This document shows positions 25,764 to 47,234 of a DNA stretch of 64,000 nt, piece after piece. The notes under the pieces are model-generated. The model was not told where the DNA came from. It saw only the letters and a program-made list of their open reading frames with translations, and did no database searches. The DNA lies in sequence record OR805292.1; one strand, 5' to 3'. A program made the position numbers and the translations under genes. Numbering within the stretch: the stretch's first letter is position 1; every line of letters begins with the position of its first letter.

Positions 25764-25790
25764 AAGCCGTGCTTTTGCGCGGCTTTTTAT
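25764..25790 (+). terminator. Intrinsic terminator
   Basis: aagccgtgc-tttt-gcgcggctt followed by a T tract. Confidence 0.75.
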
Positions 25791-25804: not shown

Positions 25805-28216
25805 ATGTACATCGATATTTTCGAAGATAAGAAAAATGAAATACTTCTAGTTGCAGAACGATCTGCAGGCAAACGAATATACAAACAATACCCCATAGAT
25901 CATACGTATTACATATTAGATGCAAACGGACCGTATAAAGATATATTCGGTAATAATGCTAAAGCAATTAAGCCATCTAGCATAAATGAAAAAATGACTC
26001 AAATGAAAATGCTAGATTTTTCGCAAACGTGCGAAATAGACGTCAGGCCAGAATTTAGATGCCTGGAAGTAAACTATAAGAATGCACCTATGCCAGATTT
26101 GCATGTTGCATTCTTCGATATCGAGACCGCGTTTGATCAAAAACGCGGTTATGCTGACCCGGCTGATCCTTTTAATCCCATTATATCAATATCTGTATAT
26201 TTGCAATGGATGCAGCAAATGGTTTGCTTAGCATTAGCACCAGAGACTATATTGCCAGAAGATGCACAACGCATAGCATCAGAAGTAGGCGAAACAATTA
26301 TATGTAAAAATGAAAAAGAAATGCTAAGTATGTTTATTGACTTAGTAGAAGATGCAGACATTTTATCAGGTTGGAACTCAGAACGTTTTGATATTCCTTA
26401 TACTTTTAACAGAATTGTAAAATTATTAGGTAAGAATGAATTAAGAAAATTATGCCTTTGGAATCTTATGCCCAAGAAGCGCAATATTGAACAAGAAGGC
26501 GGCAGTAGTTTTGTTACATTCGAAACGTTCGGTAGAATACATTTAGATTATCTTCAATTGTATAAAAAGTATAATTACGAAGAACGTCATAGTTACTCGT
26601 TAGATTCTATTTCGGAAATCGAACTAGGTGAACGAAAAGTTCCATACAACGGAACATTAGACAAACTTTATAAATATGATTTTAAAAAGTTTTTAGAATA
26701 TAACATTCAAGATACTCGACTCCTAGATAAGTTAGATAGAAAATTAAAATATATAGATCTAGCTTCCACTATTGCACATAGTAATTGCATTCCTATCCCT
26801 ACAGTTATGGGTGCAGTAGCTACAACTGAACAAGCAATTATAATCGAAGCACATAATAACGGCATGGTAGTGCCATCTAGGCAACGTTTTAAAAACAATG
26901 ATACACTTAAAGCTGCGGGCGGTTGGGTAGCATATCCTAAAGTGGGACTGCATAGAGATATTGGCTCCAGTGACTTGAATTCTCTGTATCCTTCTGTGTT
27001 AAGGGCACTAAACATGAGCCCAGAAACTATTATAGGACAAGTTCGGTTAACGCTTACTAACCCTGCAATCGAAGAATGGTGTGCAAAAGGCGGAACAAAA
27101 CATACATTTGCTGCATGGTGGAACGATAGGTTTACCACTTTAGAAATGGAATATGTGTTAAACAAAGACAGGGGTACTATATTAACGTTAGATATGGCAG
27201 ACGGGCGCTCGTTTGAACTGTCAGGTGCCGAAATATACGAATTAGTATTCAACAGTGGTCAGAATTGGCATATCAGTGCTAACGGAACTATATTTACACA
27301 AGACAGGGCAGGTGTAATTCCGTTACTACTTACAAGATGGTATGCAGAACGTAAAGGGATGCAGAAAATTGCATCAGATTATAATTCTTTAGATAAAGAA
27401 CACCATAGCGACAAAACTGTATTTTTAGAAGATAAATCAGTATTAGATGGAATATGCGTAGGCGAAGTTGAATTAGCAGACCATTATAATATTAATGATG
27501 TATATGTTGCAGCTACATTAAAAAGTCTTGTCGAATCAAAAAATTGGCAAGAAGTAGCAATATATATGAAAAAATATGGACTAGAAGTGTCGTCTGACAA
27601 TTCAATTGTTATGTCAGATTCCCATATGCAAACCGAATATTACGAATATTGGGATAAAGCCCAGTTAGTTCGTAAAATTGGATTGAACAGCTTATATGGC
27701 GGACTACTTAACGAACATTCTAGATTCTACGATAAAAGACTAGGACAGAGTACTACACTCACAGGGCGCTGTATCACTAGACATATGGCATCTAAAACAA
27801 ACGAAATGTTCACTGGCATTTACGATCACGAAGGCGATTGTGTAATTTATGGCGATACAGATAGTGTAGATGGATCAACTATCCTAAATACTTCTCTAGG
27901 TAAAATAACTATAGAAGAATTGTTTAATGTGTCTGACAAGCATATAGTTCATGCAGAAAAAGAATTTGCTTCAAATGAAGATGTTATGGTAATGTCATGG
28001 GATAATTCTGCAAAACAACCATATATGGGGCATATAAACTATGTGTACCGGCACGAAGTAGAAAAAGAGTTATTCGAAATAGAAGACAACAACGGAAATA
28101 AAGTTATTGTAACCGAAGATCATTCTATTATGGTTATACGTAATGCAGAACTACTAGAAGTTAAGCCCGCAGAGTTAACAGACAGTGATATAATATTATC
28201 TATTGTATATGAATAA
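25805..28216 (+). CDS. polB: Family-B DNA polymerase, N-terminal part, fused to split-intein N-half
   Basis: Exonuclease motifs FFDIET, WNSERFDIPY and YNIQD; polymerase motifs SDLNSLYPS, KIGLNSLYG and YGDTD, followed directly by intein sequence SVDGSTIL...TEDHS. ATG 25805 preferred over track start 25769. Confidence 0.95.
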   Translation: MYIDIFEDKKNEILLVAERSAGKRIYKQYPIDHTYYILDANGPYKDIFGNNAKAIKPSSINEKMTQMKMLDFSQTCEIDVRPEFRCLEVNYKNAPMPDLHVAFFDIETAFDQKRGYADPADPFNPIISISVYLQWMQQMVCLALAPETILPEDAQRIASEVGETIICKNEKEMLSMFIDLVEDADILSGWNSERFDIPYTFNRIVKLLGKNELRKLCLWNLMPKKRNIEQEGGSSFVTFETFGRIHLDYLQLYKKYNYEERHSYSLDSISEIELGERKVPYNGTLDKLYKYDFKKFLEYNIQDTRLLDKLDRKLKYIDLASTIAHSNCIPIPTVMGAVATTEQAIIIEAHNNGMVVPSRQRFKNNDTLKAAGGWVAYPKVGLHRDIGSSDLNSLYPSVLRALNMSPETIIGQVRLTLTNPAIEEWCAKGGTKHTFAAWWNDRFTTLEMEYVLNKDRGTILTLDMADGRSFELSGAEIYELVFNSGQNWHISANGTIFTQDRAGVIPLLLTRWYAERKGMQKIASDYNSLDKEHHSDKTVFLEDKSVLDGICVGEVELADHYNINDVYVAATLKSLVESKNWQEVAIYMKKYGLEVSSDNSIVMSDSHMQTEYYEYWDKAQLVRKIGLNSLYGGLLNEHSRFYDKRLGQSTTLTGRCITRHMASKTNEMFTGIYDHEGDCVIYGDTDSVDGSTILNTSLGKITIEELFNVSDKHIVHAEKEFASNEDVMVMSWDNSAKQPYMGHINYVYRHEVEKELFEIEDNNGNKVIVTEDHSIMVIRNAELLEVKPAELTDSDIILSIVYE
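27863..28216 (+). mobile_element. Split intein N-fragment (117 aa, Ser1, no Cys)
   Basis: Starts right after YGDTD; block A SVDGSTIL and block B VIVTEDHSIMV, then a stop codon. Confidence 0.9.
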
Positions 28217-29891
28217 AGAATATTATCAGTCATACGCAAAAGAATTAAAAAAGAATAATAAGAAAGAATACAATCGTATTCTTTCTTTGTATGAGCCTGT
28301 ATTTGATAAATGGGTTGCATTCAAGTATTATATAGAAGGAATATCGCCGCCTGTATGTAAAGAGTGTGGTAATAGAATAACTGTTTCGGCAAAACAAGCA
28401 GAATATCACACAGAATGCAAATATAATAAACACAAGTATTCATTTGATAAATTTATAAAATGCATAGATGATGACCAATACATATATTGTGTGTGGAATG
28501 GATATATTTCAACATCTGACAATATAACATACAGATGCACTAAACACGGCATAATTGTTCAAAAACTTAGTTCTAGACTAAAAGGTCACAAATGCCAAAA
28601 ATGTTCAGCTGAGCGTAAAGTAAGTCTAGATAACTTTAATAACTGGAAAACGCAGTGTTCTAAAATACATAATAATTTTTATGATTATTCTGTATCTACT
28701 GATTTTACATTCTTAACAAAAGATGTATCTATTAAATGTCCAATACATGGAATATTTAAACAAAAAGCAAACGTTCATCAATCGGGTCACGGTTGTAAAA
28801 AATGCTCGTTCGAAGCCATCGGTCATAAATTATCATATGACACAGATTCTTTTATAGAAAGAAGTAATAATGTTCATAATAATTTTTATGACTATACCAA
28901 AACTATATACACTAACATTAGAGATAAAGTTATTATAACATGCCCGATACATGGCGACTTTAACCAGATAGCATATTATCATACTGCCGGGCACGGTTGT
29001 CAGAAATGCGATTTAGATAAAGTAGCAGAAACTACATATAGATCTAAGGCAGAAATAGAAATATTCGATTTAGTTAAATCTTATTGCTCAGATACAATTC
29101 ATTCATACAATAAATTTGGGTTCGAATTAGACATATATGTTCCTAGTAAAAATCTTGCAATAGAATATAATGGACTTTATTGGCATTCTTCTAAACACAT
29201 AGAAACTGATCAAAAGTATAAAACATACCATCTTGATAAAACCACTACATGTGAACAAAATAATATCCAATTATTACACATTTTCGACAACGAATGGCAT
29301 ACTAAAAAAGATATATGGATCTCGGTAATAAAAAATAAACTAGGTTTATCTAATAAAATATATGCAAGAAAAACAGAAATTAAAGAAGTTAATTTCGATG
29401 ATGCAAAGCAATTTGCCGAAACGAACCATTTGCAAGGTCATGCACAATTTCGGCATGCATACGGACTGTATTATTCAGATCAATTAGTTTCTTTATTAAC
29501 AATTGCAAAGCCCAGGTTTAATAAAAATGCAAACTGGGAAATAGTAAGATTTTGTAACCTAAATAACACAAGTGTAATAGGTGGGTTTTCTAAATTATTA
29601 AAGGTAGTTTCTTGTAATTTTACAGGCAAGATAGTATCATATGCAAATAGGCGCTGGTCCGTAGGAAACGTTTATGAAAAAAACGGATTTGCTAAAACTT
29701 CAATAATAGCTCCTGGATTTTATTATACTGACTTCAAAGATACATATAATAGGTTATCTTTCTCTAAAGACAAGGCAAAAGTTAAATTAAAAAATTATAA
29801 TAATTCAGTTAGTGTAGTAGAAAATATTTACGCAAACGGATATGGCAGAATTTGGGATTCAGGAAATATTGTTTATACAAAGGATTTATAA
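28209..29891 (+). mobile_element. Free-standing putative homing endonuclease between the polymerase halves
   Basis: Repeated CPIHG...H..GHGC.KC Zn modules; nuclease-like core SKAE...ELDIYVPSKNLAIEYNGLYWHS...LLHIFDNEW; C-terminal YARK...HLQG...RFC...YANRRWS...WDSG module. ATG 28209 overlaps the IntN stop (track start 28203). Confidence 0.8.
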
Positions 29892-30146
29892 ATGCATAAT
29901 CTAACAAAACACCTTTTAGGTGTATTTTCTGCAAAAACAGAAGACGAAGAATATAAAAGTGCAAAAAGAGCGCTAGAAGAATTAAACAAAAATATAAAAG
30001 AAAGAGATCCTAATAAATTTAATGTGTCTTTAGGAAAGGTATCTAAAGTAACTAATTTAGGAAAAAAGAAACAATATGTATACGATATAGGGATGAAAAA
30101 TCCCGATAATCCGTATTTCTTTGGAAATAATATATTAGTTCACAAT
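29892..30146 (+). mobile_element. Split intein C-fragment (85 aa, ends His-Asn, no Cys)
   Basis: CAC AAT at 30141-30146, followed by TCT (Ser+1). Confidence 0.9.
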
Positions 30147-31031
30147 TCTTGCTATTTTACAGCATGGCCTGCAGTAAAAGACCTTGTAGAATCTGGCGAA
30201 ATGGAATGGGATAAAGATACTGTCATTAAATTATACGACAACGTTTCGTCGCAAGTAAGTGATACATTTCCGGAATTTTTAAAACAAACATTTAATGTTC
30301 CATACAAAAACTCAGAAGGTGTTATTAAGTCGGGTAGGGAAATTGTAGCTACTTCTGGTCTTTTTATTAAAAAGAAACGTTATGCTGCTATGATGTATGA
30401 TAAAGAAGGTACTAGATACGACGACGAAAACAGCCCAGGAAAAGTAAAAGCAATGGGTTTAGACTTACGTCGGTCAGATACGCCTAAATTTGTCCAAACA
30501 TTCCTTATGGAAATTCTAGTTATGGTGCTAACACATAAAACAGAAGATGAAGTAATAGAATATATTCGAGAATTTAAAAAAGAATTTAATAAAATGAAAC
30601 CGTGGGAAAAGGGAATGCCAAAAGGCGTCAACGGTATCAGTACATATGAAGATAAATTAGAAGAACACATGAATAAAAAGTTAGCAGGAAGAGAGTCTAG
30701 AATCACTGTCCCCGGTCACGTGTCTGCTGCGATGAATTGGAATAAACTAAAGCTTATCAATAAAGACCTACATACTCCTAAAATCTCAGATGGTCAAAAA
30801 TGTGTTGTTTGTTATTTAAAAGAAACCGCAGACAATCATTTTACTAGTATAGCATATCCTGTAGATGAATTGCACTTACCAGAATGGTTTACGTCTTTGC
30901 CATTTGATGAAGATTTAATGAGAGAAAAAGTAGTAGATAACAAAGTTAAGAACCTTTTAGGTATTCTAAAATGGGATTTTAGTAAAACAGAAGAAGCTGC
31001 TGCACACTTCGATTCGCTGTTTGGTTGGTAA
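29892..31031 (+). CDS. polB: Split-intein C-half fused to family-B DNA polymerase C-terminal part
   Basis: VYDIGM...YFFGNNILVHN|SCYF (blocks F/G, Ser+1), then KKKRYA and VKAMGLDLRRSDTP (PolB thumb); own AAGGA SD. Confidence 0.95.
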   Translation: MHNLTKHLLGVFSAKTEDEEYKSAKRALEELNKNIKERDPNKFNVSLGKVSKVTNLGKKKQYVYDIGMKNPDNPYFFGNNILVHNSCYFTAWPAVKDLVESGEMEWDKDTVIKLYDNVSSQVSDTFPEFLKQTFNVPYKNSEGVIKSGREIVATSGLFIKKKRYAAMMYDKEGTRYDDENSPGKVKAMGLDLRRSDTPKFVQTFLMEILVMVLTHKTEDEVIEYIREFKKEFNKMKPWEKGMPKGVNGISTYEDKLEEHMNKKLAGRESRITVPGHVSAAMNWNKLKLINKDLHTPKISDGQKCVVCYLKETADNHFTSIAYPVDELHLPEWFTSLPFDEDLMREKVVDNKVKNLLGILKWDFSKTEEAAAHFDSLFGW

Positions 31032-31111: not shown

Positions 31112-31858
31112 ATGATTGTAGACAATTTAAAGGACGTAGTTCGTAACACTCACGGTTTGGGTTTTATAGATACTGTTAAAATTATCGGTTCTGTAAATGA
31201 AACTAAATTAGAAGCTATGTCAACTAATAAAACTGTAGTTATGTACGGTTCTTTAAAAAAATCCATTCCGGGGTTAGACGATACTGTAGGTTTAAGTAGA
31301 ATGTCTGTACTGAGCGGTATGTTAAATTTCCCACCATATTCGGGAGATGATGCTGAAGTTTCTATTAAGAAACAAGAACGTAACGGTGAAGAAATTCCTG
31401 CAGAAATTGTATTTTCTTCTTCGACGGGTCATAAATCGTCGTACCGGTTTATGGCACGAGATACAGTAGACGAAGTGCTAAAAGTTCCGCCGTTTAGAGG
31501 AGTTGTGTGGGATATAGTTATTCAACCTACTAAACAAGCGATGAAGGATCTTCAATATTTTAGTGCTGTATTGGGTTCTTATGAATCTAACTTTTTAGTT
31601 AAAGTAACAGACGGTGTTTTAGAATTCCACATAGGTACCGGTGCTACTAGCGACCGCACCGTTGTACCATTTGCAAAAGATGTAAAGAGCACATTACGCA
31701 ATAACTGGTCCTGGCCATTACCAGAAGTGTTAGCAATTCTAAAAAACGCAGATAGTGGCAAATGTACTATGTCTATTTCTAGCCAGGGTGCATTAATGAT
31801 TGAACTCGATACTGGATTAATAGAAGTTCAATATATTCTTCCTGCAAAAAGTGCATAA
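31112..31858 (+). CDS. Putative DNA polymerase sliding clamp (gp45/PCNA-like)
   Basis: 248 aa, directly after the polymerase; alternating beta-alpha pattern ending YILPA. Size and position fit a clamp. Confidence 0.6.
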   Translation: MIVDNLKDVVRNTHGLGFIDTVKIIGSVNETKLEAMSTNKTVVMYGSLKKSIPGLDDTVGLSRMSVLSGMLNFPPYSGDDAEVSIKKQERNGEEIPAEIVFSSSTGHKSSYRFMARDTVDEVLKVPPFRGVVWDIVIQPTKQAMKDLQYFSAVLGSYESNFLVKVTDGVLEFHIGTGATSDRTVVPFAKDVKSTLRNNWSWPLPEVLAILKNADSGKCTMSISSQGALMIELDTGLIEVQYILPAKSA

Positions 31859-45384: not shown

Positions 45385-45738
45385 ATGATCGTTAGCGAGA
45401 TTATATATTCTATTTTCATAGCTGCATTAATAACAGTTATGACTATACTATATATAAGTCTCAGAATAATAACATGTAAGATATTAAATAAGTCATTAAA
45501 GATTTCAGCTAATGTAATTATATATGGTACCTCTAATATAGAATATGTATATATTCCCGAAATAAAATATAAATTTCTTTCTTTTAAAATAACACATTCT
45601 GGTTTAGTTATGTTTGACAAAGAGTTTGGATTTAGGACACTAAACGATGCTATAAATGCATTAAATATGTATGTAGACGCCGATATTATAAAAATAGTAT
45701 ATAAAAAGGTACCCACATTTTATACTTGGCACGAATAA
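45385..45738 (+). CDS. Membrane-anchored hypothetical protein (paralog 3)
   Basis: ATG 45385 (track start 45358); single N-terminal TM; FRTLNDAI motif. Confidence 0.6.
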   Translation: MIVSEIIYSIFIAALITVMTILYISLRIITCKILNKSLKISANVIIYGTSNIEYVYIPEIKYKFLSFKITHSGLVMFDKEFGFRTLNDAINALNMYVDADIIKIVYKKVPTFYTWHE

Positions 45739-47234
45739 TGGACAACTTTGATATAGAATTAAAAGAACTCATAAAAAATACAAATCCTAACGCATTAGGA
45801 AATGTAGTAAAAAGTAAAAAAGAAATATATGAGGAATTAGTTCGTCGAACTAATTCCTTTCTTCGTGACGACGTTTCTGTAACAGAAAGGATTCATATAT
45901 ACTTAAATCCGGCTGATAATGTTTACTGTAAGTATGATAACAAACGGACACTAAAGCGAAATAAAGATACAAAACAAACCCAATACGGATTTTGCGGAAA
46001 TAAAAGTAAATGTAAATGTCATATGGAATGGTCTTTAAAAAATCATCCAGGCATGACACAATCCGGAAAAGAAAGTATGAAAACAAAGAGGATAAAAACT
46101 TGGATAGAAAAATACGGTGTCGATAATCCATCTAAGTCAAAAGATATTATTGCAAAACAGCAATTAAGTAAAAAACATATAAAGCCAGATCATAGAACTA
46201 TAAAGGAATTGGGATATAAAAAAGTAGTAGAACGACTTTCTAACATACTCACCCCTACATTTAGTATAGACGAGTACGAAGGGTGCTTTAGAAAAAATGT
46301 GTATGACTGGGTATGCAATGCATGCGGAAATATAGTTATCGGACACGTAGATTATGGGTCTACTCCGAGGTGCAATGTTTGTAATCCTTTAACAAAGTCT
46401 GCCGGCGAAAATGAAATATCTAACTATATAGTATCGCTAGGTTTTGATGTGATTAACAATGACCGATCTATATTATCTAACAAAGAATTAGATATAGTAA
46501 TTAAAGGTACAAACATAGCAATAGAATATAATGGTTGTTATTGGCATTCTACAAAACACAGAAAAAAATCATATCATGTAGATAAATTTATAGAATGCAG
46601 AGATAAAGGAATAAAGTTAATACAAATTTTAGATGTAGATTGGATATCAAAACAAGACATAATAAAATCAAGGTTAAAATCTATTTTAGGTTGTAGTGAT
46701 AGAATATATGCAAGGAATACAACTATAAAAGAAATAACATTTAACGAATCTTTAACTTTTTTAGAAGAAACTCACATCCAAGGTTCTTGTCAATCATCTG
46801 TAAGACTAGGTCTATATGACAGTGAGAATATGTTAGTAGCCGTAATGACATTTGGGAAATCTAGATATACAAAAGAGGAATATGAATTACTTAGATATGC
46901 TAGCAAAAATACTGTTGTAGGAGGAGCCAGCAAACTTCTTAAATATTTCATAAAAACCTATTCCCCCAAATCTATCATTACATACGCAGACAGGTGCTGG
47001 TCAGATGGAAATTTATATAAACAACTCGGGTTTACAAATGTAACTAAGAATGACAGAAATACAGGATATTGGTATATAAAAGACAACATAAAATATCATA
47101 GATCTAATTTCATAAAATCTAAGATTTCTAATAAAAATAATTTACATCTAAGCGAATCGGAAATAATGGATAGTTTAGGTTATTTAAAATATTACGATTG
47201 CGGCAATTACAAATATACATTGCAGGTACGCTAG
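45738..47234 (+). mobile_element. Free-standing putative homing endonuclease (paralog of 28209-29891)
   Basis: ATG 45738 overlaps the upstream TAA. KYGVDNPSK repeat and Zn ribbon, then KSAGE...ELDIVIKGTNIAIEYNGCYWHS...IQILDVDW and the same YARN...HIQG...YADRCWS...YYDCG C-terminal module. Confidence 0.78.

Follow-up and report, generated by a model that had tools for sequence, protein, structure and literature searches.

Fractured genes, in which the halves of an intein are encoded on separate ORFs of the same strand that flank a free-standing endonuclease ORF, were described by Dassa et al. in 2009, mainly among phage DNA-metabolism genes and with Vsr-like endonucleases in half of the loci (PMC2677866). 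The split inteins of Aes123 PolB1 (PMC11923092) and CP21 PolB1 (PMC12707363) were reported to trans-splice in vitro without reductant. The native halves of both were only about 30-40% spliced in vitro owing to aggregation of IntN (PMC11923092; PMC12707363), thus homology to these inteins is no guarantee of efficiency. Split inteins that natively lack Cys are, according to the literature, very rare, and the engineered CL and CLm inteins of the Mootz laboratory were derived from Aes123 PolB1. A split PolB intein was also published for Pseudomonas phage vB_PaeM_MIJ3 (MIJ3) by Imam et al. in 2019, who listed blocks A, N2, B, N4, F and G (PMC6892783). Their paper contains no discussion of Ser/Ser chemistry, the absence of Cys or trans-splicing, and notes neither the long IntC nor the relation to Aes123.

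The locus analyzed here is from phage Cassandra, a PA5oct-like Pseudomonas jumbo phage (Wroclawvirus) that matched with 100% identity. The window is the whole stretch of DNA analyzed, 64,000 nucleotides from record OR805292.1. The split PolB intein of MIJ3 and PA5oct is the same element as that of Cassandra, with 98.2-98.9% identity over the 5.4-kb region, 96.6-99.1% identity of IntN, an identical C-extein protein and a matching layout of three ORFs. The records of Cassandra, PA5oct and others annotate the locus as DNA polymerase, homing endonuclease and DNA polymerase.

Anatomy of the polB locus

A sequence-only reading had proposed that polB is broken inside the catalytic YGDTD|S motif by a naturally split, Cys-free intein that surrounds a free-standing homing-endonuclease gene. 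The results support that proposal, and the coordinates and sequence statements on the break all checked out (Table 1). Also confirmed were an IntN of 117 aa with Ser1 and TEDH, an IntC of 85 aa ending LVHN|S, Ser at positions 1 and +1, and the complete absence of Cys from the 117 + 85 aa of the two halves. The YGDTD sequence occupies aa 682-686 of part 1, and IntN and part 1 end together at TAA 28214-28216. The part 1 ORF, located just downstream of the terminator-like hairpin at 25764-25785, is open from GTG 25769; the hairpin sets the 5' boundary of the polB transcription unit. The endonuclease ORF fills the gap between the polymerase fragments as had been claimed, overlapping part 1 by 8 nt at the part 1 stop and directly abutting the ATG of part 2 with its own stop. 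An alternative endonuclease start at TTG 28203 is possible.

Table 1. Features of the fractured polB locus of phage Cassandra (window positions).
Feature	Position	Strand	Description
Terminator-like hairpin, end of upstream DsbA-like gene	25764..25785	+	9-bp stem, 6 GC pairs, T-run
polB part 1	25805-28216	+	803 aa; ATG with AGGA upstream
polB N-extein	25805..27862	+	686 aa; exonuclease domain, palm/fingers; ends in motif C YGDTD; Pfam DNA_pol_B_exo1 and DNA_pol_B
IntN	27863..28213	+	117 aa; Ser1, NX motif R63-H64, block B T84-E-D-H87, no Cys, net charge -14
Free-standing homing-endonuclease gene (predicted)	28209..29891	+	560 aa; ATG 28209, TAA 29889-29891
Perfect hairpin	28260..28287	+	12-bp stem, 4-nt loop; 51 nt inside endonuclease ORF; z = -3.2
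Shine-Dalgarno-like AAGGA	29880..29884	+	7 nt 5' of part 2 ATG; read from sequence
polB part 2	29892-31031	+	379 aa
Whole IntC	29892-30146	+	85 aa; ends LVHN; no Cys; +1 Ser, +2 Cys
IntC N-terminal extension	29892..30023	+	aa 1-44; K/E-rich
Canonical IntC core	30024..30146	+	aa 45-85; GTG first codon; blocks F and G; ends H84-N85; no Cys; net charge +4
polB C-extein	30147..31031	+	294 aa; Ser+1, Cys+2 (SCYF, rest of motif C), then thumb; stop codon included

Colinear exteins and a conserved split intein

The N-extein (residues 1-686) aligned with residues 1-600 of L007, an intein-free PolB, and the C-extein (residues 1-294) with residues 601-882. At the junction, D686 was opposite D600 and Ser+1 opposite S601 of L007 with 0 residues missing or duplicated. 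The exteins are exactly colinear with an uninterrupted homologue, and the intein pattern has not arisen by chance. An uninterrupted YGDTDS is present in 64 of the 80 closest IMG/VR relatives.

The IntN region, part 1 aa 693-798, matched the Pfam Intein_splicing family (PF14890) with 37.1 bits (cut-off 35.8), and part 1 matched TIGR01445 of NCBIfam with 31.9 bits (cut-off 24.5). Part 2 aa 22-85 matched positions 99-155 of the same Pfam profile with 23.2 bits, below the cut-off as is expected for a C-terminal fragment. Ser1 immediately follows YGDTD and is aligned with Ser1 of 10 homologues. The NX motif, in which a His after Arg or Lys is specific to Ser1 inteins (PMC10189870), is aligned with KH or RH in 10/10 homologues, and block G (LVH84-N85|S) is invariant across 20 relatives. 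The locus contains the residues that define a class 1 intein (Ser1, TxxH in block B, penultimate His, terminal Asn and Ser+1) and has the same-strand layout of the fractured genes reported by Dassa et al. Judged by these features, the element is a class 1 intein with oxygen nucleophiles only, naturally split in a fractured gene. The opposite charges of IntN and the IntC core (-14 versus +4) fit assembly by capture and collapse.

Polymorphism was examined in 10 phages, whose sequences varied at 224 sites and contained no indels. The pN/pS ratio was 0.04 for the N-extein, 0.05 for IntN (21 synonymous and 4 non-synonymous polymorphisms), 0.12 for the endonuclease and 0 for the C-extein (32 synonymous, 0 non-synonymous), and the C-extein protein was 100% identical across 11/11 Wroclawvirus records. 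Purifying selection on IntN is as strong as that on the polymerase. IntC at first seemed low in synonymous diversity, with 2 synonymous sites in its 255 nt, but in 200-nt bins this was within the regional scatter and was dropped.

Comparison with homologues identified Aes123 PolB1 of Aeromonas T4-like phages as a counterpart, with insertion at DTD|S, Ser1 and Ser+1, an (R/K)H in the NX motif, TxDH, HN, natively Cys-free halves, the typical split site and a Vsr-like endonuclease gene between the halves. IntN matched Aes123 by tblastn with E=8e-10 and about 33-34% identity at the same insertion point. Further tblastn matches were obtained to the split inteins of CP21, likewise about 33% identical, and PTm1 at DTD|S; in each an endonuclease gene separates the halves. 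Among the 11 split homologues compared, only those of Cassandra, Aes123 and L022 are natively Cys-free. The Cassandra intein differs from Aes123 in the length of IntC (85 versus 39 aa), the +2 residue (Cys versus Val) and the endonuclease family, and polB of Aes123 is broken at an additional upstream site (gp43A/B). The PolB mini-intein of Salicola phage SCTP-2 is also homologous (~37% identity) and closest in IntC blocks F and G; however, it is a contiguous 163 aa with no endonuclease, inserted two residues upstream (YGD|...|TDS), with Thr+1, a penultimate Lys and 2 Cys. The gut-metagenome contig L017 has the same three-gene architecture, and all five segments are similarly diverged (39-54% identity).

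At 85 aa, IntC is about twice the usual length. The additional ~44 aa are missing from IntC of Aes123, CP21 and PTm1, whereas extensions of a comparable 40-50 aa are found in a metagenomic subclade, similar in length, poorly conserved in sequence and accompanied by either type of endonuclease. Linkage of the extension to the Hef-type endonuclease was rejected, since L018, L019 and L020 pair the extension with an Aes123-type endonuclease. Translation of part 2 from GTG 30024, codon 45, would yield a canonical 41-aa IntC and leave the 44-codon extension outside the protein, in keeping with the coincidence of codon 45 with the beginning of IntC in relatives that lack the extension and with the location of the L017 ATG two codons from the equivalent point. 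This start is nonetheless unlikely: the GTG lacks a preceding Shine-Dalgarno sequence, whereas ATG 29892 has AAGGA at 7-nt spacing and adjoins the endonuclease stop. Furthermore, the 44 codons are open while each of the other two frames contains 5 stops, and an open extension of 40-50 codons recurs in about 10 divergent metagenomic homologues. With translation from ATG 29892, the extension might be a functional accessory module and not a scar, for example one that promotes solubility of IntC or of the thumb fragment or tunes capture of the acidic IntN, although we regard such a function as doubtful.

The endonuclease between the halves

The endonuclease was annotated as HNH in MIJ3 by Imam et al. 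(PMC6892783) and in PHROG 559. An HNH identity was rejected in the present analysis, as no HNH family was matched in Pfam or NCBIfam at E<=0.01 and the core is Vsr-like; the protein is predicted to be a Hef-type EDxHD/Vsr-like enzyme. Hef-type enzymes were placed in the EDxHD family by Taylor et al. in 2011 (PMC3239194). N-terminal helices and a zinc ribbon are accompanied by three DUF723-type zinc-ribbon repeats (aa ~101-275; Pfam DUF723), a nuclease core at aa ~278-377 (29040-29339) with E306, D308, E319 and H326, and a C-terminal Mom/GNAT-like domain at aa ~380-560, with Mom PF25680 in close homologues. The AF2 model of the endonuclease had a pLDDT of 92.7. The single protein matched no PDB sequence, while a family profile built from 50 sequences matched the catalytic domain of I-Bth0305I (3r3p) with E=1.5e-5 and GNAT with E=0.049. 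D308, E319, G322 and H326 are invariant in the 50 homologues, and D308 and H326 are at the positions mutated in the I-Bth0305I crystal construct (D196A, H213A). Sub-threshold Pfam matches to Vsr and MTES_1575 were obtained for family members and for a paralogue within the window.

In its conserved Asp, His and Glu residues, the nuclease core resembles that of I-Bth0305I and the T4-type Hef enzymes (PMC3239194). I-Bth0305I has N-terminal NUMOD/HTH modules and resides in a group I intron (PMC3239194), whereas the Cassandra enzyme has DUF723 zinc-ribbon repeats before the nuclease and a Mom/GNAT-like domain after it. The assignment to PHROG 559/3339 contrasts with PHROG 22677 for the Aes123 endonuclease, and only the nuclease core is common to both (hhalign probability 91.5%). 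In the loci of Dassa et al. a hairpin was upstream of the endonuclease ORF in all (PMC2677866), whereas in Cassandra, where the ORF and part 1 overlap, the only strong hairpin is inside the ORF. Such an upstream hairpin is present in L018, L020, L021 and PTm1; L017 has none. The internal hairpin of Cassandra is invariant in the 10 phages, absent at the equivalent place in L017 and possibly an attenuator of endonuclease expression.

Joining of the polymerase fragments

The best explanation of the locus, which we consider highly likely, is a polB fractured by a Cys-free split intein and joined by protein trans-splicing, with a Hef-type homing endonuclease. According to this explanation, an intein seated between the YGDTD and SCYF of catalytic motif C would have been split into two genes by insertion of the homing-endonuclease gene at the canonical endonuclease loop. 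Part 1, the endonuclease gene and part 2 lie head to tail on one strand and are probably co-transcribed; the stretch from part 1 to part 2 contains no called terminator. Once translated, IntN (acidic) and the core of IntC (basic) would associate into the HINT horseshoe fold, in which an N-O acyl shift at Ser1 would be followed by trans-esterification to Ser+1, cyclization of Asn85 and an O-N shift, ligating the exteins into a single 980-aa polymerase with the YGDTDSCYF motif intact. In mixed infections the endonuclease is presumed to cut alleles without it and then to be copied into them by recombinational repair, although homing is not observable in Wroclawvirus since the endonuclease is fixed (11/11 known genomes).

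The intein is very probably functional. It had also been claimed that active polymerase requires trans-splicing, which is very probable on four grounds: the position of the break within motif C, the full set of splicing residues, the strong purifying selection on the intein and the experimental splicing of homologues. The literature searched contained no junction peptide, full-length PolB or splicing assay for phage Cassandra.

Alternatively, the two fragments could form a non-covalent heterodimer, with the intein halves serving only as an association handle or with splicing defective, an arrangement resembling the intein-less gp43A/gp43B split of some T4-like phages. Intein-less split polB occurs in relatives, with a second break further upstream in L019, L021, L022 and Aes123, and the native IntN of Aes123 has only partial activity in vitro (PMC11923092). 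However, the Cassandra break falls within metal-binding motif C, where unspliced halves of about 200 aa in total would occupy the active site. A handle for dimerization alone would need no Ser1, NX His, TxxH, HN or Ser+1, yet all of the catalytic splicing residues are kept and the pN/pS of IntN is low (0.05), and a heterodimer is very improbable.

Still harder to credit is joining at the level of RNA or translation, either through a group I intron with the endonuclease ORF inside it or through frameshifting and read-through with a nested endonuclease. Phage polymerase genes are interrupted elsewhere by endonuclease-bearing group I introns, e.g. in LUZ24, and the endonuclease ORF and part 2 share a reading frame with a single TAA between them. 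However, the frames of part 1 and the endonuclease differ, and the in-frame TAA is not conserved, as the endonuclease and part 2 of L018 are in different frames. No Rfam family was at threshold in 27500-30600, even with E<=1 and permissive filters, where the only match was an unrelated sRNA on the opposite strand (E=0.19), and the whole window contained no match at gathering scores; a group I intron or other structured RNA at the locus was rejected on these searches. The sequence flanking the break consists of recognizable in-frame intein blocks and the interval is fully coding, in agreement with the earlier statement that there is no room for an intron. These results leave protein trans-splicing as the preferred explanation.

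The sequence-only reading had further called the intein a new, divergent candidate tool for protein engineering. New it is not, given the MIJ3 intein of 2019 with a 97.4% identical IntN (PMC6892783). The literature searched contained no test of the element and no remark on its Cys-free nature, on which account the description as a candidate tool is fair but modest. The intein adds a further member to the Aes123 PolB1 family, already mined by the Mootz laboratory; its 85-aa IntC is long for tool use, and it is probably orthogonal to Aes123. For engineering it is a reasonable addition to an existing screening pipeline, though an incremental one. If the extension were an accessory module, then combined with natively Cys-free halves and a 37 C host, it could provide an efficient Cys-less split intein orthogonal to Aes/CL and LCGC14.

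For phage biology, the intein and its homing endonuclease would be a textbook selfish pair, lodged in an essential enzyme at its most conserved motif, and replication of therapeutically studied P. aeruginosa jumbo phages (PA5oct, Paride, Callisto) would depend on protein trans-splicing. The polB relatives comprise alleles that are intein-free, contain a mini-intein, are split with either endonuclease type or, as in L022, are split without an endonuclease, a comparative series that illustrates the gene-breaking model of Dassa et al. within a single polB lineage.

The split polB locus of Cassandra

The 5.4-kb region was 100% identical to OR805292.1 from Pseudomonas phage Cassandra, a PA5oct-like jumbo phage (Wroclawvirus, Arenbergviridae), and shared 98.2-98.9% identity with ten other records (Deifobo, Paride, PAC2, Ettore, Callisto, 30-2, 30-3, MIJ3 and two of PA5oct). 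The architecture proposed in the sequence-only reading was recovered in full: a break at YGDTD, an N-terminal intein half (IntN) with Ser1 and a TEDH block B, a C-terminal half (IntC) ending LVHN before SCYF, no cysteine in either half, and an endonuclease ORF filling the gap. The endonuclease start lies 8 nt ahead of the end of part 1, and the start of part 2, with AAGGA 7 nt upstream, abuts the endonuclease stop. Both parts gave Pfam and NCBIfam matches to the polymerase domains and to an intein splicing domain, the part 2 intein match falling below the cut-off. The claim that no intron is present agreed with Rfam searches, in which no family exceeded threshold in 27500-30600 under permissive filters or in the whole window at gathering thresholds. 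The window (1-64000) also contained no tRNA genes.

Features of the locus and related elements (window coordinates)
Feature	Position	Strand	Description
Part 1	25805-28216	+	803 aa; 117-aa IntN at end, directly after YGDTD
IntN			Ser1; block B T84-E-D-H87; no Cys
N-extein insertion	27389-27631		81 aa (aa 529-609) relative to intein-free L007 PolB; just upstream of motif B
Endonuclease ORF	28209-29891	+	560 aa; ATG 28209, TAA 29889-29891
Endonuclease C-terminal domain	29346-29888		aa ~380-560
Hairpin	28260-28287		Perfect; 12-bp stem, 4-nt loop
Shared reading frame	28209-31031		Endonuclease ORF and part 2, one TAA between
Part 2	29892-31031	+	379 aa; first 85 aa IntC ending LVHN, then SCYF
IntC extension	29892-30023		~44 N-terminal residues, K/E-rich
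Codon 45 of part 2	30024		GTG; no Shine-Dalgarno
Downstream ORF	31112-31858		248 aa; directly after polB; PHROG 12062
Endonuclease paralogue	45726-47234	+	Free-standing Hef-type gene; 502 aa; PHROG 3339/559

The reading frame common to the endonuclease ORF and part 2 recurs, with a 12-nt spacer, in the gut metagenome locus L017; it is probably coincidental since the two ORFs are in different frames in the metagenomic locus L018. The hairpin, 51 nt into the endonuclease ORF, did not vary among 10 phages (z = -3.2 over the 131 nt around it); where relatives possess an intergenic spacer, their hairpin lies upstream of the endonuclease start, and L017 has none. The downstream ORF product had no Pfam or PDB match, and the PA5oct annotation gives it as a structural protein with MS evidence. 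An ORF of 239-247 aa likewise follows polB in nearly all of the related contigs inspected, with one gene intervening in L021 and L022.

The Cassandra IntC comprises 85 aa versus 38-44 aa in Aes123, CP21, PTm1, L021, L022 and L024; the extension is missing from the characterised IntC fragments of Aes123, CP21 and PTm1. Extensions of 40-50 aa, poorly conserved in sequence, recur within a metagenomic subclade, in about ten homologues with either endonuclease family (entries P0002-P0006, P0008, P0009, P0011 and P0012). The GTG at codon 45 could serve as an alternative start. The frame of the extension is open, with 5 stops in each of the other two frames, and the long form is likely the real one.

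Intein family and predicted trans-splicing

A tblastn search with IntN recovered split inteins at the same DTD/S point, with an ORF between the halves, in the Aeromonas phages Aes123, Aes508 and relatives (33%), Tenacibaculum phage PTm1 (38%) and Campylobacter phage CP21, and a contiguous mini-intein in Salicola phage SCTP-2. The PolB1 inteins of Aes123 (PMC11923092) and CP21 (PMC12707363) trans-splice experimentally without reductant. Since the Cassandra intein matches both, it is assigned by similarity to this experimentally validated family as a divergent member, and mainly for this reason the Cassandra PolB halves are, with high probability, joined by protein trans-splicing. The NX motif specific to Ser1 inteins, in which His follows Arg or Lys (PMC10189870), corresponds to R63-H64 of IntN, and the dipeptide aligned in 10/10 homologues examined. 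The net charges of the strongly acidic IntN (-14) and the basic IntC core (+4) show the charge segregation between halves described for capture-and-collapse assembly (PMC11923092). Over the 5401-bp region, ten Wroclawvirus genomes differed at 224 sites with 0 indels. Synonymous and non-synonymous changes numbered 77 and 11 in the N-extein (pN/pS 0.04), 21 and 4 in IntN (0.05), 52 and 27 in the endonuclease (0.12) and 32 and 0 in the C-extein (0); IntC had too few changes for an assessment.

Only the inteins of Cassandra, Aes123 and L022 were natively cysteine-free in both halves among 11 split homologues compared; a recent screen by the Mootz laboratory covered three inteins, each with one Cys (PMC12707363). 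A natively cysteine-free candidate from a mesophilic host offers a small practical upside. In L022 (5347-6990) the cysteine-free halves are encoded 108 nt apart without an endonuclease, and this locus is another candidate cysteine-less split intein.

Homologous inteins were also observed at YGD-intein-TDS, two codons upstream of DTD/S and with Thr+1, in SCTP-2 (L005), L024, L034 and seven further IMG/VR loci (L039, L042, L045, L046, L049, L062 and L066); 8/13 intein-bearing IMG/VR relatives use this site. The occurrence of homologous inteins at both sites indicates one family with two insertion points in motif C.

The mechanism in the sequence-only reading was thus retained on the strength of splicing homologues, and its description of the intein as new was not. 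For MIJ3, Imam et al. (PMC6892783) gave blocks A, N2, B, N4, F and G, with the same sequences as in Cassandra, and pointed out the likeness to SCTP-2, so the element was already known as an object. It is the split PolB intein already published for Wroclawvirus and belongs to the Aes123 PolB1 family; only the framing as cysteine-free and Aes123-family is new. Imam et al. mention neither cysteine, serine nor trans-splicing, neither PA5oct nor MIJ3 is named in the searched papers that deal with cysteine-less split inteins, and the searched literature contains no report of an experiment on this intein. GenBank labels the three ORFs DNA polymerase, homing endonuclease and DNA polymerase, with "putative Hef-like homing endonuclease" and "HNH homing endonuclease III" as variants for the second. 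The MIJ3 record uses the latter and names the part 2 gene "ATPase"; all three ORFs are hypothetical in Callisto, 30-2 and 30-3, and in the Callisto paper the endonuclease ORF, ORF154, is entered under DNA packaging proteins.

Intein-free alleles and gene breaking

Two IMG/VR loci of one uncultivated relative (L007 and L008, 49-53% identical) encode an uninterrupted 883-aa PolB. Cassandra N-extein residues 1-686 aligned with its residues 1-600 and C-extein residues 1-294 with residues 601-882, placing D686/S1 on D600/S601. YGDTDS was uninterrupted in 64/80 closest IMG/VR relatives of part 2, 13/80 carried the intein and 3/80 were ambiguous. Intein-bearing alleles were scattered among intein-free alleles in the C-extein tree, where Cassandra and L017 shared a 100/100 clade with six alleles that lack the intein. 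Such sporadic occurrence is what would be expected if the element is mobile.

Within a single polB lineage, contigs of metagenomic part 2 homologues, together with known phages, display every stage of the gene-breaking model of Dassa (PMC2677866): intein-free alleles, a contiguous 163-aa mini-intein (L034, SCTP-2), a split intein with a Vsr-type endonuclease of PHROG 22677 (L018-L021, L024) or a Hef-type endonuclease (Cassandra, L017), and a split intein lacking the endonuclease (L022). L017 has the layout of Cassandra (804 + 560 + 371 aa), with identities of 52% in the N-extein, 54% in IntN, 42% in the endonuclease, 39% in IntC and 54% in the C-extein. Since IntN identity correlated with C-extein identity (r = 0.68, 55 pairs), the element, once acquired, is largely inherited with the host gene.

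The region of the 81-aa N-extein insertion is also the place of a second, intein-less polymerase break in L019, L021, L022 and Aes123, holding a different endonuclease gene in L019, and appears to be a hot spot where insertions and gene breaks recur.

The endonuclease

The AF2 model (pLDDT 92.7) comprised helices at the N-terminus, three beta-hairpin/helix repeats that match DUF723 (zinc-ribbon type, invariant Cys and His), a nuclease core (aa ~278-377) and an alpha/beta C-terminal domain. The C-terminal domain weakly matched GNAT and in close homologues matched, above threshold, Pfam Mom (PF25680), the GNAT-like DNA-modification family of phage Mu. A 50-sequence profile matched the catalytic domain of I-Bth0305I (3r3p, E=1.5e-5), with D308 and H326 at the positions mutated in that crystal construct (D196A, H213A). 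Hef-type phage endonucleases were already assigned to the EDxHD family (Taylor et al. 2011, PMC3239194), and the Cassandra enzyme is classified by homology as Hef-type EDxHD. Pfam and NCBIfam revealed no HNH signature, so the HNH annotations lack support. The enzyme belongs to PHROG families 559/3339, whereas the ORFs of Aes123, PTm1, CP21 and five metagenomic loci belong to family 22677, with only the nuclease core in common (hhalign probability 91.5%).

The family is very large: >5000 proteins matched at E<=1e-10, and 910 phage records contained a match. PA5oct-like genomes carry hypermodified guanine according to a preprint, which means that modified DNA must be the substrate of the endonucleases. 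The endonuclease matched 5 places in the Cassandra genome (tblastn). The paralogue, with 38% identity across the nuclease and C-terminal domains, lies between ORFs for small membrane proteins and a DUF2201 metallopeptidase/VWA gene.
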